Positions 7,261 to 56,054 are shown, counted from the first letter of the stretch. The stretch is 64,000 nucleotides of DNA from Mytilus californianus (GCF_021869535.1 NW_026262668.1:10726001-10790000); one strand, 5' to 3'. Made by a program: numbers and translations. Notes: generated by a model not told the origin, from the sequence alone.

Positions 7261-9219
7261 TTACTGTTAACGTCACAGTTCAATTTGGGGTCGTCATCGT
7301 GGTCCGCGTTTAAGTAATGTTGATAACATTAAAAACAAATCCATCGGTTGGGAAGAAAAAAAAACAACTACACGTTTAACTGCAGGATAAAAAAAATATT
7401 CTTACATTGTAGGAAAATATATAATTTATCTGTACTCGCTACGAAACAAGAGAAAAGCTCGATTTGCCTCGCTGTTCTCTCTGTTTCTAAAGCTCGTACA
7501 AAATAAATTCTAAATTTTCCTAAAATGTACAAATATTGTCTATATATGTATAAATGTACTTTAACTGAGGTTGCAACTTTTTCAGGCAAAGGTGATTGAG
7601 TACAGATTTTGATGTTTTTCTTTGCAGTTTTTGTTTTAGAGGTTTTTGGCTTCCAAAGTTTTGGTCATGTCAAGAGTGCCTGATAAAAATTATTCCAGAT
7701 GTGAGAGTTTTAATCAATGATATATATTATATATATTTATTTCATATCCTCTGAAATTACATGGCAGTTGTGAATTAAATGTTGCAGGAATAATGTTTGA
7801 AAGATCTTTTTATAAAATCCCCATTAATTCTGAGAAGCTCCAATTATGACAAGCAAAGCTATTCTTCCTTCTGGTATGTTAATTTTTATTATTTCTCCAC
7901 TGAAATTACAAGGCCAAATGTTTTCAAATTTTATAAAATTGTTGTGGGAATACCATGTTGTTCTGGATGACAAAGCTATCAACAGTGTTGTTGTTCTGGA
8001 TGACAAAGCTACCATCAGTGTTGTCATTGGTTAACTTACGAACCATACTGAGATAGTTAAAAACCAAGTAATCAAATTCTGGTACGTTCATACCAACTAC
8101 AACTGAAGATAAGATTGTATAGATGAACATGTAACATTAAATGAGCTGGACAACCTCGACTGAAAACCACAAAATTACCACTAGGTAAAATAAGGAAACT
8201 TGTAAAGTCTGATAAATACTTAAAGGTTCTTGGAAAGTACTGGAAAAGCAATGTTCGGTTAAATGTGTATTTCCCTCGGCTGACAGTTTTGATTTTTATA
8301 CTTTGTATTCTACTCTACCATATACTATTAATAATATTATAGACAGATAAGTTTCCTATATCTAATGGAATGGTATTCAATGATCTTCAACTGCTACTTT
8401 ATTTGGCCTTTATAACTTCAAGCGTCACTGTTGAGTCTTTTGTAGACTAAAGCGTCTGGCGTACACATTTTTATCCTGGTATCTATGATGAGTTCATTCT
8501 AATAAATCTTGATTATCAAATCTTTTTGTGCCGTCAGAGTTTCTTTTGTAGTAGTAAAACTCACCAAAATACACATATGGGACATACAAAAATAGATCAA
8601 TAGCCTAAACTTCTTTTTTTTTGTATAGGGATGGGGGTGGGGTGGGGCTGGGTGGTGAGGCAGTAGCTCATATATTACTATTTATGAAAGGTATTGAATA
8701 ACGGGTCTTTAAATGAATGAAGTTTCAAATATTTGAGGACAAAAACTAAAAAATGCAAAAACTGATATATCTGATTATCCGTGATGGCTCTGACGTCATA
8801 TGGTATTTTTTGAGGGCTTGCTGGAGCCTCCTAACGTCAGAGAAATGTTTGTTTTAGAGACTTCTTGTGTACATTTGAAGGATTATTTTTGGTCGATTTA
8901 AACAATTCATTACTTTTTTCGAATTCAAGTGCCAAAATAAACTCTTCTTCCTTATCCACCTCAGTTCTCACAACAGAAGCTGGATACCAGGAGACTATAA
9001 ACATATACTATACGTTTATCGCTTCATATCGTCTACCACCTGTATTTGATCGTTAAAGCGCGTCATACAAAATGTGCTTCGGTCAAGGCTTTTGATCCCA
9101 ATAAAATTACAAAAAGTAGCATTCAATTCTTAAATAAAATTTTGGCAATAACATTCAAAAATTTACAGTCAAATGTTTCCTTTTAAACATGCAGATAACA
9201 AAGCACTGTATAATCAATA

Positions 9220-10025
9220 CATCTGTCAGTCCCATCAACCTTTGCACATCTGTCAGTCCTTCCAACCTTTACACATCTGTCAGTCCCATCAACCTTTGCA
9301 CATCTGTCAGTCCTATCAATCTTTACACATCTGTCAGTCCTATCAACCTTTGCACATCTGTCAGTCCTATCAACCTTTGCACATCTGTCAGTACTATCAA
9401 CCTTTGCAAATTTGTCAGTCCTATCAACCTTTACACATCTGCCAGTCCCATCAACCTTTGCACATCTGTCAGTCCCATCAACATTTGCACATCTGTCAGT
9501 CCCATCAACCTTTGCACATCTGTCAGTCCTATCAACCTTTGCACATCTGTCAGTCCCATCAACCTTTGCAAATCTGTCAGTCCCATCAACCTTTGTACAT
9601 CTGTCAGTCCCATCAACCTTTGCACATCTGTCAGGCCCATCAACCTTTGCACATCTGTCAGTCCTATCATCATTTGCACATTTGTCAATCCTGTCAAGCT
9701 TTGTACATCTGTCAGTCCTGTCAATCTCTGCACATCTGTCAGTCTTGTCAAGCTTTGCACATCTGTCAGTCCTGTCAATCTTTGCACATCTGTCAGTCTT
9801 GTCAAGCTTTGCACATCTGTCAGTCCTGTCAATCTTTGCATATCTGCCAGTCCTGTCAAGCTTTGCACATCTGTCATTCCAATCAATCTTTGCACATCTG
9901 TCAGTCCAATCAACATTTGCACATCTGTCAGTCCAATCAATCTTTGCACATCTGTCAATCCAATTAATCTTTGCACATTTGTCAGTCCAATCAACCATTA
10001 CGATTCGTCAGTCCTCTCAACCTTT
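9220..10025. repeat. 27-bp minisatellite array 1 (unit catctgtcagtcctatcaacctttgca), ~29 copies
   Basis: 9-aa periodicity in all overlapping ORFs (HICQSHQPL / CTSVSPINL / STFAHLSVP; DRTDRCAKV / GLTDVQRLM). Confidence 0.95.
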
Positions 10026-10707
10026 ATATGTATACACAAGCTTTTTTTAGACTCGGTATAGTTACACAAACTATACTCATCATAAGCTCTATAGAGCTTT
10101 CAACCGAATACATACGAAGATGTACAATAATGTAAAAAGCATAATCATGCAAGCAACCTAAAAATAGAGAAGCATACATAAAAGTAAGCACAACACAGTC
10201 ATGGCAAAGCAAATTATTCATTTATTTCAAAAGCCTTCAAAATGTCCATTTAAACAGCAGCACTATACAGGTTTTTATCAAGAGAAGAACGTCAATCTTC
10301 AAGCTGTCTTAGTATAATGGTCCATGCCACGACGGAAAGCACAGAGATTTGGATTAAATCCAAATCAAGTAATCACTAAGCCGGTTGTAGCTGAAAAACT
10401 TTTTCAAAACTTTTGGATAAAATAGGCAGGACACTGACTGGTCTGTAATTTGATTAGTCTAGTTGACTGTTTTTCTTGTGTAGTGGTGTAGCTAACTTGA
10501 GCATCTTTCAATGGTTTCTATCTTTTTTGTATTGAATGTATTGAGAATTTTCTCTACTCTGTCTGGTGTTATTTTCTGAAAATTAAAGTGGATGCTCTCA
10601 CCACTATGATTATTTTATTTCCACAATGCTAGGGTGATAAGAATATATCACATCATTCCCGACTTTATTACCAACAGTAGAGAAAAAAAATAAAATGTTC
10701 TGCTACC

Positions 10708-11230
10708 TTTACACCTCTACCAGTCTAATCAACACTTGAACATCTGTCAGTCCCATCAACCTTTGCACATCTACCAGTCTAATCAACATTTGAACATCTG
10801 TCAGTCCCATCAACCTTTGCACATCTACCAGTCTAATCAACATTTGAACATCTGTCAGTCCCATCAACCTTTGCACATCTACCAGTCTTATCAACATTTG
10901 AACATCTGTCAGTCCCATCAACCTTTGCACATCTACCAGTCTTATCAACATTTGAACATCTGTCAGTCCCATCAACCTTTGCACATCTACCAGTCTTATC
11001 AACATTTGAACATCTGTCAGTCCCATCAACCTTTGCACATTTGTCAGTCCTATCATTATTTGCACATTTGTCAGTCCTACCAACCGTTGCACATCTACCA
11101 GTCTTATCAACCTTTGCATATCTGTCAGTCTTATCAGCCTTTGCACATCTGCCAGTCATATCAACATTTGCACATCATTCAGCCCTAGTCCCTTTACACA
11201 TCTGCAAGTCCTATTAACCTTTGCACATAT
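10708..11230. repeat. 27-bp minisatellite array 2 with 54-bp dimeric higher-order unit
   Basis: Alternating units give the 18-aa period HQPLHIYQSNQHLNICQS. Confidence 0.92.
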
Positions 11231-12773: not shown

Positions 12774-15065
12774 ATGTCTTTTGTCCCAGTGCTTTGGAAC
12801 CGCTTCAATCAAAGGCAGAATGATTCTGATGACTTGTTCCACTTCATGGATTACTGGAACCCCATGCCCGTAAGCTGGAGTTATGGCCGACCCGTGATTC
12901 AGAGAAGACACAGACCTGAGACTTCACTTGCGGATAGAAAGTGGACCTATAGCGTGAAGATTGGAGACTTCGATGCACAACATGTCAAAGTGAAAGTAGA
13001 GGGTGGTAAGTTTTTATTTTTTCGTCTGCCATGATTATATTTTTGTACAACAAATGGAAGTTTTTAACGACCTTGACTAGCTATACAGCCCTTGCACGGT
13101 CGGTATATTTTTGTACACAGACAAGTGCCATTATTATACCTTACATATATTTCAAACAATTCTATTGGGTAAAACGTTATCACGTGACATGGAATAATTC
13201 AGTTAATTTTCATTCAATTGCAAGGAAGAACGAATAAATTAACCCTAAAAATTTACACTAGCGTTGAATAACCCTATTATTCACCGGCGAATAACCTTTT
13301 TAATTTTTTGATTTGTACTCATGAAAATGACGTCACAGACGTAAATAAACAAAATGGCAAGGTTGAAGTTACAGGAAGCCTATTGATCGAGAGAAGAGGA
13401 AATAAGGTTTTTGACGTGCATCTTGTGCTGATGATATCTCTAATAACGGTCCTTTTCATGGCCATAAATATTTTACAAAAAGAATCTACCTTTGTTGTAC
13501 ATATACGAGACTTCTAAGACACAAATTACATGTATTTTTGAACGTCAACTTGTGTTTGTTATTGACTCAAGTAAGGGCAAGTGCTTTAACAATGATTCAA
13601 AATTCCCTTCCACTGTTAGTTCGGTATAATAAAACAATTGTGGCCCTTAAAAGCGATGAATATCCAAAATTGTCAACCCTTAAATGTTATTTCACTTCGG
13701 GCTGCGCCCTCAGTGAAATAACCTTCTCGTGTTGACAATTTTGGATATTCACCTTTTCAACGGGCCATAATGGCCTACTCCTGATTTAGATTTTTTTGTT
13801 TAGAAGTGATATTCAATGGAGAAAACGAGGGAGCGCTAAAGTAACCATGCATTATGAAATTATTTATTTTATGGTGTTGTATAAGGTATAAGCAGCTGCT
13901 TTTTTTAATTGGGGAGGGGGGGGGGGGGGGTGGGGGGGGGGGGGGGTGGTTGTACGAGATTTATAAATATGAAGGCCAGATGTGGTCTCAATTACCCTTT
14001 TCCCCCTCTTCTTCCGTGTATAGTTTCTTCGTTGAAGCCAGATGTTCACAGACACTTTTCTCATATTTTTTTCCCTTTATACCTTTATATAACACAAACA
14101 CAGTTTTAAGGTATATATGTAAAACTGAGACTAAATCCTGTGTTATTTAAAGGAAGGTATATAGGGGGGGGGGGGGGGGTTGAAACTTAGGCCTGTGACG
14201 ATGTTTTCCAGTTCGAACCAATCCCCGAAGTTCCTAAACAATTATCGTCACATTTCGTCTTTCTTATTACAAGTAAAATTCTGTGACGTAATAAACGAAG
14301 AAAACGATAGTGTGTCGGCGATGTAAACGTTCATGTGTGCACCTGTCCAGTCTACGGTGCTATCGCAATATCATCGACAGCAATATGATTAAGGGACGAC
14401 CATTTAATTTAATTTTTTTTGGGGGTGGGTATATTGTGGACGGATATTAATATAATTTCACCTACTAGTATTTACAATTATATCCTAGATTAATAAAGAA
14501 TGTTACAGAGTTAAAAATGTTCTTGGGCACTAAAACTGTTAAGCACATTTGCAGAGTATTTTTCTTTGTTTCAGGTAAGGTAATTATTCATGCTAAGTAC
14601 ACAGATGGTAATGATGAATGGGGCGATACTGTCGAGCGTACAAGGACAGTCCAGATACCAGAGAATGTTGATGCTGAAAAAATTCACAGCTTCATGAAAT
14701 CGGATGGAACTATGATATTAGAAGCCCCGTACCGTCTTTCAGAGGAAAAGCAACTCCAAGTTGTACCACAAGAAGGTCGTGCCTTGGTGTCAAGCGACAG
14801 TCACAGCAATTTGATGAAATTCAATGTCGAAAATTACCGACCAGAGGAGGTTAAAGTATCTTGCAAAGATGGGATTTTGACAGCCCAAGGAGAACGAAAA
14901 AGGTCAGAAGACGGTCATGAAATTCGTGAGTCGTTTTTTCGTCAAATGACAGTTCCACGGTCTGTGGAGGGGGAAAACATCCAATGCTTTAGAGATGATG
15001 AAGGGAGTCTTACTATCCGTGCACCAACGGTTGAAGATGTTGAAATGGAACAAGTAAAAAAGTAG
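12774..15065 (+). CDS. Small heat-shock protein with two alpha-crystallin domains, copy 2, 240 aa
   Basis: Exons 12774-13005 (g|gtaagt) and 14575-15065 (tttcag|gt) total 723 nt; same intron position and phase as copy 1, roughly 85-90% identical by eye. Confidence 0.92.
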
Positions 15066-20037: not shown

Positions 20038-20367
20038 GGTAGGACTTGTAGACGTACAAGGGCTGATATAACTAGCAGATGTGCATAGAGAATATCATAT
20101 GGTTTTTTCAATATCACACACCGTATCAACACTCAACCTATATAAAACATATGATATTCTCTATGCAGATGTGCATAGAGAATATCATATGGCTTTTTCA
20201 ATATCACACACCGTATCAACACTCAACCTATATAATCCCTCGAGCAGAGCTCTAGGGATTATATTGGTGTCTCGGGTTGATACGGATGTGATATTGAAAA
20301 AGCCATATGATATTCTCTATGCACATCTGCTAGTTATATCAGCCTTTGTACGTCTACAAGTCCTACC
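20038..20367. mobile_element. Fold-back MITE (~20172-20322) with an inverted duplicate of its end and flank, plus a 20-bp perfect hairpin
   Basis: 20041-20130 is the reverse complement of 20276-20363. catatgatattctctatgca-gatg-tgcatagagaatatcatatg at 20148-20191. Inner hairpin tataatccct...agggattata. Confidence 0.75.
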
Positions 20368-20925
20368 AACCTTTACACATCTGTCAGTTCTATCAACCTT
20401 TGCACATCTGTCAGTCCTATCAACCATTGCACATCTGTCAGTCCAATCAACCTTTTCACATCTGCCAGTCCTGCCAACCTTTGCACATCTGTCAATCCTA
20501 TCAACTTTTGCACATCTGTCAGTCCAATCAACCTTTGCACATCTGTAAGTCATATCAACCTTTGCAAATCTGTCAGTCCTACCAACCTTTTCACATGTCA
20601 GTCCTATCAACCTTTGCACATCTGTCAGTCCTATCAACCTTTGCACATCTGTCATTCCTATCAACCTTTGCACATAGAACAGTCCAATCAACCGTTGCAC
20701 ATCTGTCAGTCCTATAAACCTCTGTACATCTGCCATTCCTATCAACCTCTGTACTTCTGCCAGTCCAATCAACCTGCACACATCTGTCAGGTCCTATCAA
20801 CCTTTGCACATCTGTCAGCCAGTCAACCTTTGCACATCTGTCAGCCAGTCAACCTTTGCACATCTGTCAGTTCTATCAACCTTTGCATATATGCCAGTCC
20901 TATCAATATTTGCACATATGCACAT
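20355..20925. repeat. 27-bp minisatellite array 3
   Basis: Same unit as arrays 1 and 2; single-base indels break the frames. The 3' flank is homologous to that of array 2. Confidence 0.92.
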
Positions 20926-38137: not shown

Positions 38138-39972
38138 CTACCGAATCGAGACTATAAGCAGGATTTTGATTACAAAAAATTTGAGCTCTCATCCTTGCAA
38201 AATACCATAATCGAAAAGATAGAAATGGGGAAAGTTAAAATTGAACCAATAAAAGAGGAGGAAATACATGATGCTGTAAAAAAACTGAAAAACTGAAAAT
38301 CCTCAGATATCGCTAGAATATCAGCCGAACACTACAAACACGCTGAGGCCGAGCTTCTACCACTCATATTGCATATCCTCAATACATTAATAGAACAACT
38401 TGACATCCCACAGATGCTGAAAGGAGGAACAATGACACCAGTATTGAAGAAAAATAAGGACCGTCAAAACCCGGCAAACTATAGAGGAATCACAGTGACC
38501 AAAATCCTCACTAAAATCCTACAGAGTGTATTAAAATTCAGAATAGATATAAAGATCCATCAAATCCGAACCCAACTACAACGAGGATTTACTGAAGCCA
38601 TACCCATGATATTTGCTATATTCCTGGCATCGGAAGTTATAATACAATCTTGTGAAGATGACCAGGAAATCCTGCTACTAACTTTGGATGCAGAAAAGGC
38701 TTTTGATAAACTGGAGCATGAAATATTCTTCAACAAGGTCTATATTATGGCATTGACGGTGACATGTAGATTCTACTCCGTAATATGTATAGAGAAATGA
38801 GCATTAGAATTAAATGGGACGATCTTGTTTCTGACAAAATATCTGTCAACCGAGGAATTCAGCAAGGAGCAAAACTTTCAACCGCCTTGTACAAATGCTA
38901 TAATAATGCCATTCTAGATAGTGTAACAGAAAGTGGATTAGAAAGCCATATGGGGACAAAATACATTGCTACACCAACATGTGCAGATGACATATTAGTA
39001 CTAGCAAACTCTGAAAGTGAACTGCAGGGCATTATGGACATTGTATACAACCATACACAGAGAGACCTAGTCAAGATCAACCCACAGAAATCGGACCTTG
39101 TATGCTATAATACCAATCAGGACAGAGTAGTTAACATTGGCAGCTCTCAGATAGGTAGAAGTACAACTGCAAAACATCTAGGTATAACCAGAAATGAAAA
39201 GAATACAATTGATATTGATGAAAAACTGAAAGTAGGAAGGGCCACTATCTGTGGCATGTTAGGAGCTGGATATAAGGAAAGGTTTTTCTCCTCTTGTATC
39301 CCACAATCTGTGGAAGGTATATTCTGTTCCAAAAATGACATATGGGCTGGAGGTCATGCCTATTAAGAAAAAAGAAATGGACCAAATGGAAACCATGCAA
39401 AGGAAAATATTAAGGCAGCTACAGGGCCTTCCCAATCAGATAGCCAACACAGCAGTCTATACATTAATTTGGGCAGTACCGATCCCTATGGTGATAGACC
39501 GAAATTTGCTATCTGTGTTGATGAACATAATAAGAAACAACAACTCATTAGAATTTCAAATCCTAGAAAGTCAACTTGCAATGAAAAATGAAAAAAAGCA
39601 ATATTTTTGTAAATAGATTTACAGAAAGCTCTTACCAAGTACGGGATGGAACCTGTTGATAATCTTATGCAACACCCAAAATCAAAGGAAAAATGGAAAA
39701 GGATAGTTAGATATCATCAAAAAAGATACTGGCATGAAGTATGCTTAGAATACCAGTCTAATAAAAAGACATTGGCATATCTTCAAATACAGGAAAACCC
39801 ATCCTTTATGCCGTTTAATATCTGGCAGTGCACAGGAAACAACCCAACTAATATGAAAACAGGAGAAATGAAGAGCAGACTAGTAACACAAACATATATG
39901 CTACAGACAGTTAGGTCTAGACACAATAAGAATATATCCCCAAAAAGTATATTGTGTAATACAGCAGATGAC
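38138..39972 (+). mobile_element. Dead non-LTR retrotransposon (LINE) RT fragment, left inverted copy
   Basis: NPANYRGIT, QRGFT, LDAEKAFDKL, RGIQQGAKLS, TCADDIL, INPQKS, KHLGI; frameshifts at the same places as the copy at 43634-45585. Confidence 0.9.
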
Positions 39973-40531
39973 GAAATTGTTAATAAAGGTGGGACTGCAG
40001 ATGCAATAGTCGTATCTTTGGTAGATTGAGGATAGAAGATGTAATGTTCTCGCACAATGCTTAACGCGTCCATCTCACTAAAAAATGGACGCCAAGTGAC
40101 AGCAACTTCAATTTCGAAAACAGAATTATGACGGACAGACGACGAATACCAAGATGAGTGCTCTAAATCCAGTGAAATACATGCATTCACATGAAAACAT
40201 GAAGCCTTATCACTTTTACTGCAGAAAATAGTGTGACAGAATTATTTATTTTTTCAAAGTCAATAAAAGGCATTAAATGTCTGTTTTCTGTCAACTTTCA
40301 CAAAATACAAAAGCGTTAGAATACAAATACACTCATTTTCTCCTGAAATAAAAAAAAAAACCCAAAAAACAAAAAACTGAAAAAAATAAATTTCGCCTAC
40401 ATTGTCCATTAACTGACATGATACTGTCCTTAATCGAAATTAAAGTTACAATTTGAAAAACTGACAGCGCCTCCGTGCATAGTTGTTACATCATTCAAAC
40501 AGTGCTTGGGTGAATACGGACAATCAACCCC

Positions 40532-42503
40532 ATGTCGGAAAAAGCGAAGATCGAGTATGACGAACGTTTCGTTCCTCCAGTTACAGAGAAGGAAATCGAA
40601 GAACTCGTTTCTGCTCAAACAAATGCTAACACAAAGAAAAATACTAGGTGGTCAGTTGGAGTATTTAACGAGTGGAGATCAGCAAGAGCTAAACACGACG
40701 ACAAAAATTCCGGATTTGCATCTCATGGATGCAGAGAGTATGGATTTCTGGCTTCAGCGGTTTATTTTGGATGCTAAAAAGAAGAAGGGAGGCGATTACC
40801 CACCCAAATCTCTATATTATATCGTTTGTGGTCTACTCAGACACCTCAGAGACATGAATGTTAACGACAGAAACTTTCTGGATGAGAAGGATGGTCGCTT
40901 TGCTCCGTTTAGACGTGTATTGGATGCTAAGATGAAAGATTTGCTGTCCAAGGGACTAGGAACGAAAACGCGCAGAGCCGATCCAATATCACTAGAGGAT
41001 GAAGAACTGGTGTTTTTGGAAAGAGTAGTGCTACAACTTTACAATCCACCGTTTTCTTTCATAACTGCAAGTTATTTGGATTAAGAGGCCGCGACGAGCA
41101 CAGAAATCTTGATTGTGATCAGTTTGATATTGGTATTGATTCTACAGGAAAGTTTATTAGATTCTTCGGGAGAAATAACAAGACATTTAAAGGTGGCCTC
41201 GGACACATGCAATTAGCGAATAAAGATATAAAGCACTATTCACAGGGCGGTAAGTTGTTTAATTTACATATATTGACCAATTCAAACACGAAAGATTATT
41301 TGACTAAATTATTCTACGCGTGTACCCGTTTTATATACTTTTGTCAATTTGAATTTCATTGTGAAAAGAAATATTGTTTTTATATTATTTTATTCAACCC
41401 CGCACTCCGGCTTCATCCACCAACAAAAAAAAAATTGACCTCCACGATATGGCCAATAGTACTGAAAGTGGCATTAAAGACCAACAATCAATCAATCATT
41501 TTCAAATCAAAAGCTCATATACGAAATTGTAATATACACGATAAGTTTTTTTGAATATACATGCACTGCTATAATTTGATTATTTGAATAAATTATTCTA
41601 CGGATGTACTCGTTTTATATACTTTTTAATATTATTTTATTCAACCCGGGCACTCCTGCTTCATTTCCCAAAAAAATCAGACCACCACTATATAGCCAGT
41701 AATGCTGAATTGGCGTTAAACAGCAACAACTAATCAATCATTTTTTAAAAAAAAGGTAAAATCAAAGAGAGTAAGCTTTACATACCATTGCACGATATAG
41801 CCAATTGTGCTGAAAGTGGCGTTAAACAGCAACAGTCAATCAATCATTTTCAAACCAAAAGCTCATATACGAAATTATAATATACACGATAAGTTTTGCA
41901 GAATATAACTGCAACTGTCATAATTTTCTTTAAATAGAAGCAAGCGGAAAAAACTCTTTCAATTTGTTTTAATTTGTAGGTCCAAGATGCATAATTGCTT
42001 ACTATGAAGAGTACTTGAAAGCTGTGGGCTCCGGAACATTTTATCGACAACCGCTCAACATGGATGGGAAAGATCGTTTTCGTTATGGAAAATCAGCACT
42101 TGGAGAAAATAAATTACACGGACTAATGCGCGAGCTATGTCAATAAGGTGGACTTTTAGGGAACTGAACGAATCATTCCTGAAAACTCACTTGTGCAACC
42201 GCCCTATACCATATAGGTATTGATGAACAAGAAATCATGACAAGAACTGGTCACCGCTCCATGGCATCAGTGAGAGCTTACAAAACTAGCAATGGGAGCA
42301 TTCAAAAGAATGTGTCAAAAATCTTGAACCCACCCGTTCTTTCGAGCGAAGATGAAAACACGACCGTTTCCAACACAGTAGATGAATTGCGTACAGATAA
42401 TGGTTACAAAATGAAAAATGTCAAGAAGCACTGTTTGAATGATGTAACAACTATGCACTCAGGCGCTGTCAGTTTTTCAAGTTGTAACTTTAATTTCAAT
42501 TAA
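40532..42503 (+). pseudogene. Crypton-type tyrosine recombinase (DUF3504/ZMYM-KCTD1-like), two exons, inactivated
   Basis: N-term ERF..TEKEIEELV..TNANTKKNTRWSVGVFNEWR; DYPPKSL; FGLRGRDEHR (catalytic Arg); NKTFKGG; intron 41250-41979 (g|gtaagt...ttgtag|gt); TNHS*K, RTGHRS, VRAY (catalytic Tyr). At least two frameshifts and three stops. Confidence 0.8.
41270..41900 (+). repeat. Tandem ~250-bp units ending in SINE-like 3' tails inside the YR intron
   Basis: acgatat(g/a)gccaat...ctgaaagtggc(a/g)ttaaa...caatcaatca at ~41445, ~41687, ~41792. Confidence 0.6.
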
Positions 42504-43633: not shown

Positions 43634-46600
43634 TTAAAAGTTCTGATAGAGCCCATTCTTCAAGTTTTCCAGGTATGATTTTATTTTCTGGAGGTGCCTT
43701 TCACTTGTATGCTTATGTCTACTGCATGAGAGTATGAAGTGTTCTAGATCTTCATCTGCTGTATAACACAATATACATATTAGGGATATATTCTTATTGT
43801 GTCTAGACCTAACTGTCTGTAGCATATATGTTTGTGTTACTGGTCTGCTCTTTATTTCTCCTGTTTTCACATTAGTTGGGTTGCTTCCTGTGCACTGCCA
43901 GATATTAAGCGGCATAAAGGATGGGTTTTCCTGTATTTGAAGATATGCCAATGTCTTTTTATTAGACTGGTCTTCTAAACATATATACTTCATGCCAGTA
44001 TTTATTTTGATGATATCTAACTATCCTTTTCCATTTTTCCTTTGATTTTGGGTGTTCCATGAGATTATCAACAGGTTCCATCCTGTACTTGGTAAGAGCT
44101 TCCTGTAAATCTATTTACAAAAATTTAGCTTTTTTCATTTTTCATTGCAAGCTGACGTTCTAGGATTTGAAACTCTAATGAGTTGTTGTTTCTTATTATG
44201 TTCATCAACACAGATAGCATATTTCGGTCTATCATCATAGGGATCGGTACTGCCCAAATTAATGTATAGACTGCTGTGTTGGCTATCTGATTTGGAAGGC
44301 CCTGCAGCTGCCTTAATATTTTCCTTTGCATGGTTTCCATTTGGTTCATTTTTTGTTCTTAATGGGCATGACCTCCAGCCCATATGTCATTTTTGGAACA
44401 GAATATACCTTCCAAAGATTGTGGGATACAAGAGGAGAAAAACCTTTCCTTATATCCAGCTCCTAACATGCCACAGATAGTGGCCCTTCCTACTTTCAGT
44501 TTTTCATCAATATCAATTGTATTCTTTTCATTTCTGGGTTTACAGGATGTTTTGCAGTTGTACTTCTACCTATTTGAGAGCTGCCAATGTTAACTACTCT
44601 GTCCTGATTGGTATTATAGCATACAAGGTCCGATTTCTGTGGGTTGATCTTGACTAGTTCTCTCTGTGTATGGTTGTATACAATGTCCATAATGCCCTGC
44701 AGTTCACTTTCAGAGTTTGCTATTACTAATATGTCATCTGCACATGTTGGTGTAGCAATGTATATTGTCCCCATATGGCTTTCTAATCCACTTTCTGTCA
44801 CACTATCTAGAATGGCATTATTATAGCATTTGTACAAGGCGGCTGAAAGTTTTGCTCCTTGCTGAATTCCTCGGTTGACAGGTATTTTGTCAGAAACAAG
44901 ATCGTCCCATTTAATTCTCATGCTCATTTCTCTATACATATTACGGAGTAGAATCTACATGTCACCGTCAATGCCATAATATAGACCTTGTTGAAGAAAA
45001 TTTCATGCTCCAGTTTATCAAAAGCCTTTTCTGCATCCAAAGTTAGTAGCAGGATTTCCTGGTCATCTTCACAAGATTGTATTATAACTTCCGATGCCAG
45101 GAATATAGCAAATATCATGGGTATGGCTGCAGTAAATCCTCGTTGTAGTTGGGTTCGGATTTGATGGATCTTTATATCTATTCTGAATTTTAATACACTC
45201 TGTAGGATTTTAGTGAGGATTTTGGTCACTGTGATTCCTCTATAGTTTGCCGGGTTTTGACGGTCCTTATTTTTCTTCAATACTGGTGTCATTGTTCCTC
45301 CTTTCAGCATCTGTGGGATGTCAAGTTGTTCTATTACTGTATTGAGGATATGCAATATGAGTGGTAGAAGCTCGGCCTCAGCGTGTTTGTAGTGTTCGGC
45401 TGATATTCCAGCGATATCTGGGATTTTCAGTTTTTCAGTTTTTTTACAGCATCATGTATTTCCTCCTCTTTTATTGGTTCAATTTTAACTTTCCCCATTT
45501 CTATCTTTTCGATTATGGTATTTTGCAAGGATGAGAGCTCATATATTTTGTAATCAAAATCCTGCTTATAGTCTCGATTCGGTAGCTCGTGGAAATAACT
45601 TGTCCACATTTGAAGAATGTCCTCGTTTGTTTCAGCAATTTGGTTACCCTTTTGTAGAGTCTTGGTAAATCGGTTACCATCTGACCTTTGTGTTCTTAGT
45701 ATTTTGTGAAAAGGTTTATTGTCCGAAGAAGATGCTATCATTATCTGGTTTGCCAATTTTTCTCTTTACGAGGCATATGCTTGTCTATGAGCCTTTTGGA
45801 TGTTATTAGCTGTGATTTTAACGGATTATTTTTGTCTTTTGATGCTTCTCCATTTTTTCCATAAGGCATGCTTTTCTTTAATAATTTTTGATGCTTCTGA
45901 TATTTTCTTATTCCAAAGGGATTTCCCAGTGCTTTTGGTTCTTATTGATTTGTCGTAGTTCGGTATAGCCTCATTGCATGCATTATACATTATGTTTCCT
46001 ATAGATGTAATGTCCTCCTCTAAATTTTTGTTTCTAGCTTGAAGTATTATTTCCACTCCATCAGATATGGTCAGTTGATATTTTTGTAGATTTAATTTTT
46101 TCTATTTTGTTCTTACAATGACTGATTTTGGTTTGTTGGATTTCCTAATTAGTTTTCTCTTGATTGTAGCTATGACAGGTACATGGTCAGATGTGTTTTC
46201 TGGTTCCATATCTAAGATCTGTACATATTGTGTTAGTTCTTTACTTCCTGAGAAAAAAATAATGAAGATGTCCCGTTATGATGCAAAAAGGTTTCTTTCT
46301 CTGGGTAATCTCGGTTTAGTTCCAATGAGTTTTCTGCCAAGAATGTCTTTAATAGAGGATCATGAGATGTTTTTGATCGATGAATAGACCCATTCAAGTC
46401 TCCAGATAGCATTATATGATGAGTGTTTCTGTATTTTTTATTATTTTTGTCATTTGTGCCAGAGTATCTTTGTACTCATTTTCCATATCTTTGTTTTCAG
46501 ATGGCATGTATACATTAATGAGACATACTGGTGTGTTGTCAGTTTCCATCAACACTGCTCGGTAAGCGGTAACATACAAACGAAAAACTGTCGAAATGTG

Positions 46601-46850
46601 CAATTTCTTTCTGTTATAAGATAGCCATTGTATGTATCCGTCCAATCCTTCGCCTTGTCTTGTCTAATCCCTTTCCAATTTACGTTTCAACTCAATTCCT
46701 AACAGATTTTTTGTGTTTCTTTCAAATCTATAGCGCTTCCATAGCTGATCATTGCTAAACTTTCCCTTTCCAAGTCTTAAACGTCTGATTTTTCGAGCAT
46801 AAACCAATTTTTGCATTGCTACAGCAGCCATGTTGGATGTTTTAATCATA
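43634..46850 (-). mobile_element. Near full-length dead LINE (APE endonuclease - RT - CCHC knuckle); clade unresolved
   Basis: APE-like CLINVYMP (46645-46412), RT motifs as in the left copy, C-terminal CILC...EDLEHFILSC; many frameshifts and stops. Confidence 0.88.
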
Positions 46851-47480: not shown

Positions 47481-50400
47481 ATGACACTTATTACAATGGA
47501 AGAGTCAAACTACATAAAGATTGCATTGCTATTACTGAGAATATCACCACGAGCTGTCAGAATACGGTTTGACTATGAAATCCATCCTGATTGCTTAAAT
47601 AAAACATTAAATTCAAATATTCGCAAATTGACCTACCTACAAAGTAAAAGGCACATCAACCAAGAACAATGGAATTTACTTTTTCCAGGAACAGGTTGGT
47701 CAATAATTATTCTATGTTGTTTCTTTGATATATACAGAAGCCAAAATATGGCTGTTTTTCAATAATTGGTAGCGGTTTATCAAACATACATAAAGACGAC
47801 AGAAGTTTACCGATGTTCAAATCTCATAAATCGATTAGAAATAGGCAAATCAAGGTAACAAACAAAAACTGAGGAAACCGCATGAACTCAAAAAAAGAGC
47901 GCGCCCTAGTGCGTCGATAGGGTAATCGTCTCCTGCTACGCATCACTCGCCATGTGAATTCACACTCAGTCAAAATGTTACAATCGGGAACAGGACACAT
48001 TGATACAGATCAGACGACTTGTACTTGTATCTAAAATCTGAGATCGCGGAAATATATCAATAGTGAGTTTGACAACGACACATTGTATTGGTCAACCAGT
48101 TCGTGATGTTGACCATAAAACTAATGTAGGGTCGATTTCCGTCGTGATTTCGCCATAATGGCGTCCCGAAAAATGCAACCATGCCCGAATACGTCCCACA
48201 GAAAGAATGCAATCTATTTGCAAATTGTTTACTTTGTTATTCTTTCAGGAGAAGTATCATCAAAACATTTTGACAGTACGTTAATGATTTGTCTCATAAG
48301 GAATCTAACGCCAATTCAAATTAGTGACATACTTCCGATATCAACTAATATTAGTGTAGGAGCTGATCTGTCCAGAATTAAATTTTATAGAAATAAGATA
48401 GCACACTCTGAAGATGGATTTATTAGTAGCATAGATTTTCAAGATTATTGGAATGATATTAAAATGGTGAGTTTAAATATTCATTTAAAAATTTAGAGAA
48501 CACATCCAGACTTTTGGTTCAATCGAACAAAAAGGTCAATTTCATTGAAATAACTAAAGGCTGTTGGAGGTTTAACTAGCTATAAAACAAGATTTAACAC
48601 ATCATTTTCTTCGGAAAATGACTTTGCCAAGTCAGACATATGATGATTGTTTTCCATTAGTTCCGTTGGTTGGTCTCACGTTTGATTTTGTCAGTTTTTA
48701 TGGACTTCCCGATTTTGATTTTACCTTGGAGTTTAGTATTTTAGTCATACTTTTTTATTATATTCATCATTGACAATCATTTTAGCCACAAAGTAAAGAC
48801 AGACAGCTGTTTCTATCAGATATGACGATTAGTCTTATTTACAGAAAAAAACACATTTAGAATGTTTATCGGTTTTTATGTATTTGGAATCATGGCGCCT
48901 ATTTCTTGCATTAGGTGATACAGTTATGAATTTACTTGAAATTTGATTAAGTCAGAAACCTCTATTAACGAAAACACATTGGATTGTATTATGCACTGTT
49001 TTAACACGAGAAATTAATGAAGTTGTCTAACAATCCTACAAAGTCTTCTGTTGATTTTATTTGATAAAAACGACCCTTTATATCATGATGATTATAGCCT
49101 TGTTTCGCTAAAATGTAATTTCCACAAAAAAAAAAAAAAAAATTACTATGCTTATTTTCATCAAAGTTCTCAATTCCAATATAATGCTTATTACCATTCT
49201 AGGCACTACTCAGACTCGGTGGTGTTTCTATGGAGACAGAATGCGATACTTTGTATGCGAAAGAGTTTGATACTTCACAAAGAGAAGATCATCTCAGTTT
49301 TATAAAAACTCAAAACAAGTTAATAAAACTGGAGGAAGAATTGGTGAAAGTTACTGAGAGAGTTGAAATGCTAGAATTAAAACTGAATGATCCGATACCA
49401 AAGAATTTGAAAGGTAGAATTTGCGAAAGAAATATGATAAATTAAAAAAAATACGAATTGATATATAGTTGGAAAACTTTTTGATATGAAATTCAGTATT
49501 TTAAAAAAGTTAAATAGTATTAATTGCAGAATGTGAAAACATATCGAAATTTAGACATCACAATGGCAAAGAAATCAAAGACGAAAAGTTAACAATTTCA
49601 CAAAAGAGTAAAATAATTGCGATTTTATTTTCTATTTTCATTGTCCCATGATGAATACCTCATGATACAATAAAGCATTTTTATAAGTTTTATGTCATTT
49701 AAATTTTCTAAAAGAGAACTGAATGTATTTGTTACAGTACAAATTGAATTCCAATGTATAATAGTAAAATATTGAAGTTCTGATTCATACTAATTTTAAT
49801 CCAGTACAAATCTACAGACCTAGTAGAAGTTGGGATATCCTGATTTAAACTAGAAAGATGCGAGAATGACCCAGGTTAGGAAGACTTTTGGGCACCTGCA
49901 AACATGTTTTACCATAACACTTTCTGAATGTGCCTGTCCCAAGTCAGGAGCCTATTATTCAGTGGTTATTGTTTGTAGCTGTATATCATATTTGTTTGTG
50001 GTTTTGTACATAAATCAGGCCGTAAGTTTTCTCGTTTTGGATTGTTTTACATTTTGTCATGTCGGGCCTTTTATAGCTTGATATGCGGTGTGGGTAGTAT
50101 ATTTCTCAAAACTTTATCAAGTTATATATCCTCAATTAAAGACGGTTTAAAACTTGAATAGTGACAGATTTTGACAAATTCTGAGTTATGATTTAAAAAA
50201 ATTAATGTATAAAATGGACGTTCTTAACCAAAACCCCCAAAAAATGTTATTCGAAATATTTCTATATATTGTCTTTCAGATAAAACAATATTAGGTTAAT
50301 GATTTCTTTTGATGCAACCTTCGACGAGACGAGTATAATTTTCAATATTGATAGTGCTCATTTTGTTTTGAACACTTTTTGAAAAGTAAATGTTTTCCTA

Positions 50401-53400
50401 TTTATCAGGTGCACAAGTAAAAACAATAAAGTAAAAATTCAGTACAATTCAGAATCATACTAGTTATAGTTTTACGTAATATCCTGGATCCTACTAGAAA
50501 TTTGGTGTAATTCAGAATCTTACTAAATAAAATCACCTTCAAAATCAGAACTCCAATGTAAACTAGTAGATATTGGAATTACAATTTGTACTAGAAGGAT
50601 TATGGAGCCTATTGAGTTCCAGGTTGTACTGTAACATATACAACATTCCAAACTTCATTTTTAAATGTATATACGGAAAATAGTTTTGTTCTCTCCGGTA
50701 AACCAGAATAAAATCGAAATTTAAAATTGTTTAAGATATCTTTCAGATCAAGCACTTAAGGGAAATATTTATGCCAATTAATAATATACCCACTGACCCA
50801 GGTGTTTTCCTGAGACATCTTCATAAAATAGTACAAAACGTGTTAATTTTCAGAAATGCCAGTTTTGTTAGTAACATCAGGACATTCGTTTCTTCTCTTG
50901 AAAATTAAATACTGACACAGTTCGGAAGATGCCTGTACCAATTCAGAAATGACAATTGTTTTTCTTTCGTTCCATTGTTTGATGAAGTTCAACGTTCGAT
51001 TTTTTCAGTTTTAATGGACTTCCCCTTTTTGAATTTACCTTGGAGTTCGGTATTTTTGTGATACTTTTTAATAAATAAGTGTATAATCATTGTCTATTTT
51101 TAAACCACATATTTAAAAACAATGTTTTTTAAGTAATTGTACTTCTAAATATATTTTTACAAAACCGGGAAAAAGAGAACATGCAGAAAATAAATGACAT
51201 ATATGAATGACTGCATCGTAGGTACCTAGTGGAATGCTCAGGTTCAAGGTGCTTATCTAACCACCGTAAATAATTCTTATTTTATAAATTGCAGATTTGT
51301 TTGCAAAGGAGATTAAACTTTGGAAAAAAGAAATGATGACGTTCTATATTACTACTGGAGCAACAAAAGTGCTTAAAAAAATAGAGAATGACTCATTTAT
51401 AGTAATAACAGGGAATTCTGGGATGGGCAAATCTGCTATTTCTCATTATATAGCATTAACTTTAGAGATGAATAATGGCTATCAAATTACACCTTTGACG
51501 GATGCATGCGATATCGTCAAGTACTATAATCCGCCACATAATCAAATTTTTATAATAGATGATATATTCGGAAGATATTCTGTAGAAAAAAGTATATTAA
51601 ATTCTTTGGAAAGATTAAACACTAAAATCCGTTGCATTAGGACTGAAAACAGTACATTTCGCATACTTGCTACTTGCAGGTTACTGATTTCAAATACACC
51701 AATTTTTAAGAAGTTTTCACAAATGTTTCAAACAGTAGAATGCAGCTTACTGTCTAAAGAATTTGAAGCAACTGTGGCAGAAAAAAGGAAAATTGCAGCT
51801 TGCTACATTGATCAGAAAACAATAACCCGTATTAGTGACGATATGGTCAGAGGTATAGATATGTTTCCACTACTTTGCGTGATTCATAGAAACAGAAAAC
51901 AGAAAACTAAAATACTCTTATTTCAAAATCCGTATGACGAATTTGAAAAAGAGCTAGACGAGATGTATGACAATAATAAAAGCTGTATATTAGGTCTGGC
52001 ATTGCTTGTAATTCACAATAATAACCTACGAAAAGATTTGTTTTACGACAACATTCAATTTAGAGAGGCGTTTGATGCCATTGTTAATTATTTTAATTTA
52101 CCTTCTCGCCCCACGCTGCAGTATGTCTTATCGTGTCTACAGACTCTAAAAGAAATTTACATCAGTGAGAAAGCGAATACGATAACAACTTTACATGACA
52201 AAATATTTGACATCATAGCTCTGTACTTCGGGAAAAAGATTCCTAAAGTTATTTTGCAACATGCAAACGGCAATTTTATTCGAGACAGAATTCAATTTGC
52301 ATCCTTAAACAAAGAACATGATGAATTTACTATACTGATCCCTCCAGAATTAGAATGTGTATACTTTGTTCGCATGGGTATGGAAATTGAAAGAAAGTCG
52401 TTTGTCAATGTGTTTAACACGCAACAGATGAAACATGAATTGTTTCAAGAAAAAATTATAAAGTTTTTAAACAAAAACGAAAAATACATTCTGGCTATAG
52501 TACACAATCAATGGCCTTTATATCTGTCTACATTGAACGGATACAAGGAAATAGTAAAATTCATAATCAATAAAAGAAACTTGAATAACGCACAAAGTAG
52601 ACCAAGTACTGATTCACCGATGGCTAGTCATGTTGAAACTATTGATCATCAAGATGGAAATAATGAATGGTTGGTGGATACCCAAATCTTTTTAAGACAC
52701 CGACATGCACCACTACTTGTGGCATGTAAAGAAGGACGAGTAGAAATTGTTGAACTCCTTTTGACCTGTGATTATGATATTAACATTCGTGGACATGACC
52801 TAGATCCTCCATTAGTTGTAGCTTGTAAAGAAGGTCACACAGACATTATAAGTGTTTTACTAAAACATAAATGTTGTGCTAATGTCCGAGATGAATTTGG
52901 ACGTACTACCTTGCATACTGCTTGCGGAAAAGGTTATATAGACATTGTTCATCTTCTGTTATTGTACAAGTGTAATATAAACCAGACCGATAGACACAAA
53001 AGAACACCTGTATTCATAGCCTCTGAGAACGATCAACATGATATCGTAAAAGTATTACTTGAATTTAAATCAGATGTAAACTTATCGAATTCAACTGGCA
53101 AAAATGCTCTACATGTAGCCTGTCAAAGGAGAAATATGACTACTATTAAATATTTGCTCGCTACGAAAAGATGTAATATTAACCAGTTAGACAAGAAAAA
53201 AGAGACACCCTTATTTTCTGCATGTAAAGAAGGGCATAATGATGTTGTTGAATTATTGATAAGTAATAATGCTGACGTAAACATACGTAATATATTTGGC
53301 GAAACTGTACTGCATATTGCTTGTAGAAAGAGGAATTATAATACAGTTAAGACCTTACTTAAAAGTAATATTGATATTAATCAAACAGATTCAAAGAAAA

Positions 53401-56054
53401 GAACTCCATTGTTTATTGCAAGTGTCGTAGATAGAAGATCAAGCGGTATATGCGGCAACAAGGACATAGTGAGACTTTTACTTGACCACTATGCAGATGT
53501 ATCGATATGTGATCAGAATAATTGTTTTATACCTGATGTTGCTAGGATACATGGCTATGCAGACATTATTGATATTTTTGTCAAATATCAATTTAAAAGT
53601 AAAAACTCGAAAAATGGAGAATCTGATATCAAAATATTTAATGCTAGTAAAGAAGGCCATATTGAGGTTATTCACAATTTTATTGGAAAAGAATACAGCT
53701 TAAATATACGTAATAAGTATGGTCAGACCCCTTTACATGTTGCTTGTATACACCGGCGCTATAATATTATTGAATTATTGTTAAATAATAACTGTGATAT
53801 CAATGCAGTTGACAATAACAGTAGAAGTGCACTTTTTCTTGCTTGCGAAATCGGTGATGAAGAGATTGTTTTGCAGTTAGGTAATAACTACGCAGATGTT
53901 AATATCAGCAATTACGTCAGCCAGTCTCCTATCCATATTGCATGTGAGTTTGGATATACAAATATAGTCAAAACGTTATCAAGGACTTGTTTTATCAATT
54001 TAACTGACAGTAACAATTGCACGCCATTATACCTTGCTTCTAAGTATGGACGTTATGATATTGTCCAGTTGTTAATTAGTAAAAATGCTGATATTAATTA
54101 CACTGACAACGATAACAAAACCCCACTATTTGTTGCCTGTGAGGCTTCTCATATTGACATTATAAAGTTATTGGTTGATAATGAAGTCGATATTAATCTT
54201 GGCAACAACCACAATGAGACACCTTTGCATATTGCCTGTAAGCAAGGAGACGGAAATATCGCGCAGTTGCTTATTGCTCATGGTGCTGACGTTGATTTTA
54301 TTGACAATGAAGGACAGACACCTCTTCATCTAGCATTAAATGTCAATATAGTTGAAACCTTAATTAGGAACAATTGCAATACTAATATAACTGATATTGG
54401 TAATAGAACTCCGTTGTTTGTTTACTGCAAGCAAGGAAAATTTGATGACATTTTTGTTTTAATCGATAATGATGCAGACATCAACATATGCGATAACGAT
54501 GGGCAAACACCACTCCATGCAGCATGTAATAGTAATGCTGACGCCCAAAATATTGTTAAAATGTTAATCAATAAAAACTGTGCTTTGAACACAACTGACA
54601 ATAAAAATAGAACCCCATTGCTGATTGCTTGCGAAAATGGCAAATATGACATAGTTCAGATTTTAATTGACAATAAAGCTGATATCAATAAATCGAACAA
54701 GGAAAAAGAAAGTCCTTTATTTGTTGCCAGTGCGAATGGCCAAACAAACATTGCAAATATATTAATTGAAAATAGTGCTAATATTGATGACGTTAACAGT
54801 AAAGGGCAAACTCCTTTATTTATTGCATGTCAAAGGGGAAATTATAACATAGTGAAACTTTTAATTAATAATAATGCTGATGTAAATTTATGCAGTAATA
54901 CTAGCGACGCCATAATTACTACTGCATGTAAACAAAGTCGTCTTGAAAGCTTGAGCGACGACAGTTATTTACTCATAGTTAAAATCTTACTCGATTGTAA
55001 TTGCCGTATTAATCAAGCGGACAACGAAAATAAAACGCCGTTGTTTTACGCCTCAGGTCTAAGGAACGACAAACTTGTTCAGCTTTTAATTGATAATGAG
55101 GCAGATGTTCAGATTCGAAGTGATGATGGAGAAAGTCCGCTTCATGTCGCCTGTTATTGTGGACTTTCAGAGAATGTTAAAATATTGTTGCAGACAAACT
55201 GTGATATTAATCTGACGGACAATAGAAATAGAACGCCGCTTTATATGGCTTGTGGTAAAGGACATGATGATATTGTTCAAATTTTGATGGATAATAATGC
55301 TGACATGAACTTATATGATGACACAGGTCAGACCGGACTGCATGCGGCATGTAAAAGGGAATATCAGGAAACACTTCCCCATACAATTGTAAATTCTCGG
55401 TTCTTCAATATAGTTAAACTATTACTAGAAAATAAATGTCCAGTTAATCAGCTCGACAAAGACAATAATACTTCATTATTGTATGCATGTTCAATTGAGA
55501 ATGAGGACGTGGTACAACTATTGATTGACAACAAGGCTGATATAAATGTTGTCAATAATGATGGACAAAGTCCTCTTCATATAGCTAGTTATTCAGGACG
55601 TTTGAACAATGCAAAATTATTAGTGAGGTCTAACTGTGAAATTAACCAAGCCGACGGGGAGACTAAAACTCCATTGTATATAGCATGTGAACAAAGTCAA
55701 TCTTGGAAACATAACTATCATGAAATCGTGCAACTTCTTGTTGATAATAATGCGGATGTGAATATATGTGGATCAGATGATGCAAGTCCACTTCATATCG
55801 CTGCCTTATCGGGAAGTTTTATAACTGTACAAGTTATGTTAAGAACAAACGTAAACATTGATCACATCAACAACGAAAAAAAAACAGCATTACATGTTGC
55901 CTGTGAGAAAGGCCATTATGACATCGTTAAACTCTTACTCAATAATAAAGCAGACGTAAATATAAAAGATAAAGCTAATCAGACAGCACTGGATTTGGCC
56001 TGTAAATTAGGTCATAAAACAATTATGAACCTGATTGAAAGTAGAACAGATTAG
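47481..56054 (+). CDS. HEPN (DZIP3-like) - coiled coil - STAND NTPase (nSTAND3-like) - ~34 ankyrin repeats; ~1800 aa NLR-like protein
   Basis: Exons 47481-47694, 48249-48466, 49203-49413, 51295-56054 total 5403 nt in frame, all GT-AG. HEPN FDSTLMICLIRNL...RNKIAH (48389-48406); Walker A GNSGMGKS (51411-51434); Walker B IFIIDD; ILATCR; FPLLC; LHD; then TPLH/F.AC repeats to the stop. Confidence 0.88.
51295..56054 (+). CDS. Single 4.76 kb terminal exon encoding the NTPase and the whole ankyrin array
   Basis: Uninterrupted 1585-codon ORF; acceptor ttgcag|at at 51293-51294. Confidence 0.92.

Follow-up and report, generated by a model that had tools for sequence, protein, structure and literature searches.

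Among the HEPN domains catalogued by Anantharaman et al. (2013), the DZIP3/hRUL138 family was recorded with an Rx4-6H motif that is 'mostly conserved', with fusions to NTPases and ankyrins, and with an expansion in oyster (PMC3710099, Table 1). RNase L-like defence roles were proposed in the same work for HEPN domains fused to NTPases and Death domains. The pearl oyster genome was found to encode 202 such HEPN proteins, 194 of which carry the motif and more than 50 of which are joined to NACHT in an arrangement resembling that of NLRs, and degradation of viral and transposon RNA was suggested by the authors (PMC9646362). Targets of the same two kinds were likewise suggested for HEPN fusions by Kaur et al. 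(PMC8195603), and a HEPN_DZIP3-type domain has been recorded in coral (PMC10236652), Crassostrea (PMC8195603), and other genome papers. A search of the literature gave no functional study of a HEPN_DZIP3 family member. Here, we describe a gene of this family in a stretch of 64,000 nucleotides from Mytilus californianus (GCF_021869535.1 NW_026262668.1:10726001-10790000), referred to as the window, where it occupies positions 47481 to 56054 and encodes a protein with an N-terminal HEPN_DZIP3 domain, a STAND NTPase module of the nSTAND3 type, and a long ankyrin array. It is one more member of the bivalve family, with an architecture and a presumed role that have been published before and are reflected in public annotation. 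Hence, the novelty ascribed to it in a first-pass annotation made from the sequence was overrated, as both the architecture and the functional guess had been published (PMC3710099, Table 1; PMC9646362) and the protein is in RefSeq.

The gene has four exons with canonical AG/GT borders, which join in frame to give a coding sequence of 5403 nt with a single terminal stop, encoding 1800 amino acids (aa). The spliced translation is identical, residue for residue, to RefSeq protein XP_052090920.1 (P0001), and this identity, together with the exon borders and the 1800-aa frame, confirms the four in-frame exons proposed in the first-pass annotation. The other elements that it had read from the sequence, namely a HEPN domain with an intact motif, a heptad-rich linker, a P-loop NTPase with Walker A and B and three STAND-like motifs, and about 34 ankyrin repeats, were also recovered, as detailed below, and the two profiles named in it for a check, HEPN_DZIP3 and nSTAND3, both score far above their curated cut-offs.

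Transcription was assessed using public runs. The contigs of run X1, which carries the same species label and has a library type guessed as RNA ('RNA?'), skip the introns and cover exons only, at a depth of 3-7. Two of the three junctions, 47694/48249 and 49413/51295, are present in these contigs with GT..AG ends and zero mismatches, and exon 2 is covered by contigs of runs X1 and X3. Given the 49413/51295 joint, transcripts carry the HEPN exons spliced to the large exon, in agreement with the first reading of the locus. RNA support for the junctions is partial in that the joint between exons 2 and 3 is not among the contig pieces listed for the public runs. This joint is backed by the RefSeq model, by orthologues in three further Mytilus species, which share the four-exon structure, and by the continuity of the HEPN_DZIP3 profile, of which exon 1 matches positions 2-33, exon 2 positions 39-113, and the spliced protein positions 3-142. 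The raw reads of run X18 (RNA-seq of 2026, ~6% sampled) include almost none on the exons, which indicates, at most, low expression and not silence. The locus is an intact, transcribed and evolutionarily maintained M. californianus gene.

Two other origins were considered for the open frame and rejected. A prokaryotic contaminant or a horizontally acquired gene does not agree with the GT/AG introns, the spliced transcripts, a G+C content in line with that of the surroundings, and the orthologues in other Mytilus species. A pseudogene does not agree with the 1800-codon frame, which is intact in four species, or with a ratio of nonsynonymous to synonymous substitution rates (dN/dS) well below 1.

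The N-terminal part of the protein (aa 38-172) matches HEPN_DZIP3 (PF18738) with E 2.1e-32 and 112.3 bits, as compared with a gathering cut-off of 27, over positions 3-142 of the 144 in the profile, and exon 2 gives secondary weak Pfam matches to other HEPN families. The motif RNKIAH (aa 119-124) is intact and unchanged across four Mytilus species. An exhaustive search with aa 1-230 against 1.84 billion cluster representatives gave 1442 matches at E <= 1e-3, including 525 at E <= 1e-10; a word-indexed protein search with the HEPN region, limited by length and word rules, gave three proteins only. Across the 81 best full-length HEPN domain matches, as aligned in A3, R119 is invariant (81/81), N120 is kept in 74/81, and the motif His in 72/81, as Rx4H in 67 sequences and as Rx5H in five. 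S76, D80 and R114 are nearly invariant too.

The AlphaFold2 model of the HEPN domain, built with alignment A3, is all-helical, with a predicted local distance difference test score (pLDDT) of 95 and a predicted template modelling score of 0.88. When the model was aligned exhaustively with 48,161 PDB representatives, the HEPN RNases Csm6 (4rgp, Z 6.8, 113 residues) and AbiF (8vz6, Z 6.1) ranked at the top, and Cas13, the AF_0298 HEPN protein, the sacsin HEPN domain, the Swt1 C-terminal domain, a second Csm6 and a HEPN toxin matched with Z 4-5. That HEPN proteins cluster at the head of this ranking fits the Pfam assignment despite the weak Z scores, and a HEPN fold of the N-terminus, as assumed in the first-pass annotation, is thus upheld at the level of the model. 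Among predicted structures, the template modelling score (TM) was ~0.8 for HEPN_DZIP3 clusters of molluscs and cnidarian NACHT-LRR proteins, 0.70 for vertebrate DZIP3, and 0.37-0.48 for the bacterial RiboL-PSP/MAE_28990 HEPN domains. A homodimer prediction with two copies of aa 1-215, run without an alignment, scored 0.08 against a mark of 0.32, which speaks neither for nor against binding.

In the genome, two intronless HEPN_DZIP3 paralogues, L005:27-716 (+) and L006:207-818 (-) (G000 C24), carry Lys where the motif has its Arg (KNKYVSH and KNMIVSH). These are possibly inactive or altered heads.

The HEPN domain is followed by a linker helix of ~40 residues (aa 168-206), which is continuous in the AlphaFold model with pLDDT 85-93. 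It holds the heptad-rich LIKLEEEL... segment noted in the first-pass annotation, LIKLEEELVKVTERVEMLELKL, located within aa 184-205.

The next region (aa 231-383) matches nSTAND3 (PF20720) with E 6.5e-23 and 81.6 bits, as compared with a gathering score of 27.2. Walker A, Walker B and the ILATCR, FPLLC and LHD motifs are all present. In an alignment of 30 relatives of the NTPase module (A1), the invariant positions are G259 and K260 of Walker A, D303 of Walker B, R337, R343, most of MFPLLC, and H515; D304, the second Asp of Walker B, and D516 are kept in at least 90% of the sequences. The His-Asp pair H515-D516 is positioned like the MHD motif of NB-ARC proteins. The P-loop domain was modelled well by AlphaFold (pLDDT 80-90). 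Foldseek matched the STAND helical region to ORC/Cdc6, NLRP3 and EfAvs5 at E ~1e-4 with low TM; after re-ranking by Z score, generic AAA+ ATPases were at Z 11-12, with Avs4 (11.5) and Avs5 (AVAST5; 11.2) tied among them. The PADLOC models matching the protein were the candidate defence NTPase PDC-S73 (E 1.6e-11, in the P-loop region), LmuB (1.9e-6) and mad8. On the nSTAND3 profile, the conservation of the motifs, and the PADLOC and fold matches, the protein is assigned from its sequence to the STAND NTPases of the nSTAND3 clade. With the HEPN domain (aa 38-172) as putative N-terminal effector and repeats C-terminal to the NTPase, it also has, by domain assignment, the layout typical of STAND proteins.

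Membership in narrower groups was not supported. None of the PADLOC Avs models matches the protein. The A1 profile gave generic P-loop matches only among PDB sequences and no Avs chain, including the solved Avs5, at E <= 1. NACHT (PF05729) and NB-ARC (PF00931) were absent from the Pfam scans at E <= 1 and, on the spliced protein, at E <= 0.01. The Pfam scans of the protein also gave no match to a protein kinase or to KEN/Ribonuc_2-5A. The first-pass description of the protein as 'NLR/Avs-like' stands as an analogy of layout and falls as a statement of membership.

The C-terminal part consists of 33 ankyrin repeats, counted repeat by repeat with a hidden Markov model (HMM) built from the cleanest repeats of the array. 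An extra ankyrin-like cap (WPLYLS..., aa 619-641) precedes the array, with an acidic linker of variable sequence in between, and the ~34 estimated at first is thus correct. Tandem Repeats Finder detected no DNA-level repeats in exon 4; the array is therefore old and diverged, with no recent homogenisation. Substitutions in the array show a mild excess at the canonical binding-surface positions (23% vs 15%, Fisher p = 0.026), and no domain-level signal of positive selection on the array was obtained.

Four-exon orthologues are present in M. edulis, M. galloprovincialis and M. trossulus, and a fragment was found in M. coruscus. The orthologues are 87.5-89% identical to the M. californianus protein over the whole length and ~91% identical in the NTPase region. 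When the gene was compared with each of three Mytilus species by the Nei-Gojobori method (dS ~0.16), dN/dS was 0.32-0.35 for the whole protein, 0.24-0.49 for HEPN, 0.25-0.31 for the P-loop domain, 0.19-0.38 for the helical module, and 0.35-0.38 for the ankyrin array. These ratios indicate that every domain is under purifying selection that is moderately relaxed.

The gene is single copy in the 1.65 Gb M. californianus assembly, and the closest paralogue shares 40% identity with it over the NTPase module. The wider family is large: first-look candidates in the genome numbered 637 for HEPN_DZIP3 (150/150 of those scored were above the cut-off), 616 for nSTAND3, and 624 for the NTPase module of the gene itself (88 scored, all below E 1e-43). 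The candidates are mostly long intact frames, and several HEPN and nSTAND3 matches lie on the same strand a few kb apart. A family context of more than 600 candidates is typical of immune receptors. The HEPN_DZIP3-nSTAND3-ankyrin layout was found in 8/8 long cluster representatives nearest to the HEPN domain of the gene, the named ones all being from Mytilus, and UniProt entries for the orthologues bear the label 'DZIP3-like HEPN domain-containing protein'.

In the nearest paralogue lineage (P0019, P0036, P0038 and P0039; Mytilus spp.), two tandem HEPN_DZIP3 domains precede the nSTAND3-ankyrin part. These proteins are 40% identical to the window gene product in the NTPase and 54-56% in HEPN, and with their arrangement a single chain could hold a HEPN pair of the Cas13 kind. 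Further nSTAND3-ankyrin open reading frames, 40-45% identical (P0003-P0026), occur several per contig on ENA/JGI metagenome contigs of up to 825 kb; they lack HEPN exons and are named 'ankyrin repeat protein/EcfA2' by JGI. They are probably mollusc DNA that was run through a prokaryotic gene finder.

STAND NTPases that carry C-terminal repeats stay closed while ADP is bound and assemble into oligomers once a ligand binds, and the active site of HEPN RNases needs two domains side by side. From these two rules, we consider with moderate confidence that the best explanation of the protein is an NLR-like intracellular switch with a HEPN RNase effector, ligand-gated via the ankyrins. At rest, the protein would be ADP-bound and kept closed by the ankyrin array. 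Binding of a pathogen- or stress-derived ligand to the ankyrin surface would then lead to nucleotide exchange and STAND oligomerisation, and the HEPN domains of neighbouring subunits in the oligomer would form a composite site with two Arg and two His residues. Cleavage of RNA, whether viral, retroelement or host, would result in an arrest of translation or in cell death. The gene, its splicing, the three modules with their motifs, and the selection that keeps them are demonstrated here; the RNase activity, the gating by a ligand, the oligomerisation and the role in immunity are inferred from established knowledge of the two families. A sensor of the NLR/Avs-like kind with an RNase effector, as advanced in the first-pass annotation, is the standard and plausible reading of such an architecture.

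Several findings weigh against this explanation. As to the HEPN head, no report of RNA cleavage by any HEPN_DZIP3 member was found in the literature, and a sequence search of the PDB gave no solved structure of the family, the best match of the A3 profile being an unrelated protein at E 0.088, with the sacsin HEPN domain at E 1.1. Foldseek gave no match of the HEPN model to the PDB at E <= 0.001, and the fold matches to solved HEPN proteins have Z below 8, which is weak for helical bundles. The motif His is missing in 9/81 close relatives; hence, catalysis is not universal in the family. The STAND helical region was modelled at moderate to low confidence (pLDDT 40-60). The gene is single copy, with 1:1 orthologues, purifying selection and no recent duplicates, unlike a fast-evolving receptor. 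Finally, expression is low, and nothing in the present data shows induction.

Alternatively, the HEPN domain could be non-catalytic and serve either to bind RNA or as a homotypic adaptor, like the Death-fold in NLRs, recruiting other mussel HEPN proteins into a signalling complex. Many bivalve HEPN proteins lack an NTPase (PMC9646362), and the 1442 matches include many short representatives with HEPN alone. HEPN families that have lost catalysis and are proposed RNA binders are on record (PMC3710099), and the relatives without His and the in-genome paralogues with Lys for Arg point the same way as the lack of a demonstrated RNase in the family. However, the full RNxxxH is kept in the window gene and is the same in four species, and purely adaptor use does not require the invariance of the Arg or the retention of the motif in 72/81 relatives. 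We therefore regard a non-catalytic head as unlikely.

The single copy, the 1:1 orthologues and the purifying selection across Mytilus, together with low and apparently constitutive expression, would likewise suit a housekeeping P-loop/ankyrin scaffold like vertebrate ANKRD50 or TANC1/2, with the HEPN domain acting in RNA metabolism or regulation. ANKRD50-like and TANC2-like clusters are indeed among the nearest Atlas feature neighbours, at 0.88. However, Atlas scores under 0.9 are leads only, and mollusc nSTAND3-ankyrin clusters make up all of the best neighbours. The family of more than 600 candidate copies is typical of conflict genes, and a nuclease-type effector N-terminal to a STAND NTPase is a hallmark of defence and cell-death proteins (PMC3710099; PMC8195603). 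A housekeeping role thus appears improbable, and the NLR-like switch is retained as the preferred explanation.

If the switch is of this kind, a more specific and only tentative proposal is that the protein is a eukaryotic counterpart of prokaryotic STAND-nuclease and Cas13/Csm6-type abortive infection, in which the ankyrins would recognise a conserved viral or bacterial protein, the nSTAND3 module would oligomerise, and the HEPN heads would pair into an active RNase that stops translation in the infected cell. If true, a built-in RNase effector would be demonstrated for the first time in an animal NLR-like receptor, and the tandem-HEPN sister lineage would assemble its active site in cis, like Cas13. 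To our knowledge, bivalves have no adaptive immunity and live in pathogen-dense water, and they carry huge, poorly understood expansions of STAND-type genes. Should the HEPN-STAND-repeat proteins be ligand-gated RNases, they would provide a mechanistic link from animal innate immunity to bacterial Avs and to Cas13- and Csm6-style abortive infection, and could help to explain disease resistance in farmed mussels and oysters. As it is intact, transcribed, single copy and conserved in at least four Mytilus species, and has a canonical motif, the window gene is a good first bench candidate of the family.

Table 1. Features of the HEPN_DZIP3-nSTAND3-ankyrin gene in the M. californianus window (positions counted from the first nucleotide of the window).
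Feature	Position	Strand	Residues and content	Basis
Alternative first coding exon	46506-46561	+	RefSeq isoform X1 (P0028) only; +20 aa	Spliced to acceptor 47477
Exon 1	47481-47694	+	aa 1-71 + 1 nt; start codon, N-terminal helix, start of HEPN_DZIP3	RNA-derived joint 47694/48249
Exon 2	48249-48466	+	HEPN_DZIP3 core, Pfam profile positions 39-113	Pfam E 8.5e-17, exon alone
Rx4H motif RNKIAH	48389-48406	+	R119-H124; predicted catalytic dyad of HEPN RNase	Read from sequence
Exon 3	49203-49413	+	End of HEPN (to aa 172) and long linker helix (aa 168-206)	
Exon 4	51295-56054	+	STAND NTPase module and ankyrin array, to stop codon	1585-aa open frame; Pfam nSTAND3, Ank
nSTAND3 P-loop domain	51342-51800	+	aa 231-383	Pfam PF20720
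Walker A	51411-51434	+	GNSGMGKS, aa 254-261	
Walker B	51546-51563	+	IFIIDD, aa 299-304	
STAND-like motifs			ILATCR aa 338; FPLLC aa 405; LHD aa 514-516	
Helical and winged-helix-like STAND part	51801-52574	+	aa 384-641; MFPLLC, HD (H515-D516), ankyrin-like cap (WPLYLS) at end	
Ankyrin array	52710-56036	+	33 repeats, aa 687-1795; presumed sensor/autoinhibitory domain	Pfam Ank, E down to 1e-230; HMM parse

The protein P0028 differs from the four-exon product in its start. Joining 46506-46561 to 47477 onward gave the exact P0028 sequence. This alternative exon (+) lies antisense inside remnants of a long interspersed nuclear element (LINE)-like endonuclease/reverse transcriptase at 45826-46849 (-), directly upstream of the gene; hence, the start of isoform X1 looks like an exonised transposon fragment. 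Farther upstream, near-identical RVT_1 fragments at 38369-39366 (+) and 44496-45355 (-) are inverted relative to each other and flank an open reading frame at 40506-41084 (+) with a QRICH1-type domain (E 1.2e-9). Within introns 2 and 3, the segments 48683-48869, 49805-50178 and 50927-51113 have contig depths of up to ~1700, their reads continue into unrelated sequence, and false 'joints' from 487xx to 510xx appear between them. These segments are dispersed repeats, probably similar to miniature inverted-repeat transposable elements.

The mussel genome is dense in retroelements, with reverse transcriptase/endonuclease remnants 1-9 kb upstream of the gene and high-depth repeats in its introns, and this bears on what the putative RNase might cut. 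The mechanism could be the same and the target endogenous, with genome defence effected by cutting the RNA of retrotransposons or other selfish elements; transposon targets were suggested alongside viral ones for both the pearl oyster proteins (PMC9646362) and the HEPN fusions (Kaur et al., PMC8195603). However, proximity to transposons is expected anywhere in a mussel genome, and there is no specific support for an endogenous target. We give this variant only a slim chance, and a switch gated by a pathogen- or stress-derived ligand remains the preferred explanation.

Elsewhere in the window, two HSP20/alpha-crystallin segments at 4992-5363 and 14517-15065 (+), ~9.5 kb apart (Pfam E 2.6e-13 and 6.1e-17, respectively), are probably a tandem gene pair. 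The stretches 9173-11188 and 20081-20781 are long arrays of a short unit, open in several frames on both strands and reading HICQSYQPL... repeatedly, which suggests minisatellite-type DNA and not genes.

The RefSeq product name of XP_052090920.1 is serine/threonine-protein phosphatase 6 (PP6) regulatory ankyrin repeat subunit C-like isoform X2. The PP6 regulatory ankyrin subunits (ANKRD28/44/52) share a long ankyrin array with the window protein; they possess neither a HEPN domain nor a P-loop NTPase. The name derives from ankyrin similarity alone and is misleading for a protein that carries HEPN_DZIP3 and nSTAND3, the nearest relatives of which are mollusc nSTAND3-ankyrin proteins and not PP6 subunits.

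A looser comparison, drawn in the first-pass annotation, is that with RNase L and Ire1. Ankyrins (in RNase L) together with a nuclease-type domain of the HEPN superfamily are indeed in common, and induced dimerisation is the known activation rule for KEN. However, the order is reversed, the ankyrins being C-terminal in the window protein, which has 33 ankyrins and not 9, a STAND switch, and no kinase-like or KEN domain. The resemblance is convergent, and homology is limited to the HEPN superfamily.

With the animal and plant NLRs, the protein shares the effector-NTPase-repeat logic and the MHD-like His-Asp pair, and NLRP3 is among its Foldseek matches. It differs from them in having no NACHT or NB-ARC match, in having ankyrins and not LRR or WD40 repeats, and in a predicted effector that is of the RNase type and not a Death-fold, TIR or coiled-coil adaptor. 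Bacterial Avs proteins follow the same plan of effector, STAND NTPase and helical repeats, and Avs4 (8dgf) and Avs5 (9jap, 9nc9) are among the fold matches; no match to a PADLOC Avs model or to an Avs sequence of the PDB accompanies these, and the fold scores are tied with those of generic AAA+ ATPases. The NTPase of Pseudomonas Avs5 (SIR2-STAND-TPR) has been labelled Pfam nSTAND3 by the authors of a preprint (10.1101/2025.07.08.663546). As compared with Avs5, the effector of the window protein is HEPN and not SIR2/nuclease, the repeats are ankyrin and not TPR, and the gene is a spliced animal gene.

The closest described system remains the DZIP3/hRUL138-like HEPN family (PF18738) expanded in bivalves and cnidarians, with which the window protein shares the domain itself (112 bits) and an Rx4H motif with Asn after the Arg. 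Also in common are the N-terminal place of the HEPN domain, its fusion to an NTPase and repeats, the huge expansion in a bivalve, and the guess of an RNase effector for defence. The window HEPN domain lacks the NGWG loop motif that is present in the compared in-genome and Mytilus HEPN_DZIP3 paralogues. The published bivalve accounts centre on HEPN-NACHT proteins, whereas the window protein combines HEPN with nSTAND3 and ankyrins, and, unlike the copy-number-variable DZIP3-like expansions, the window gene represents a conserved single-copy lineage.

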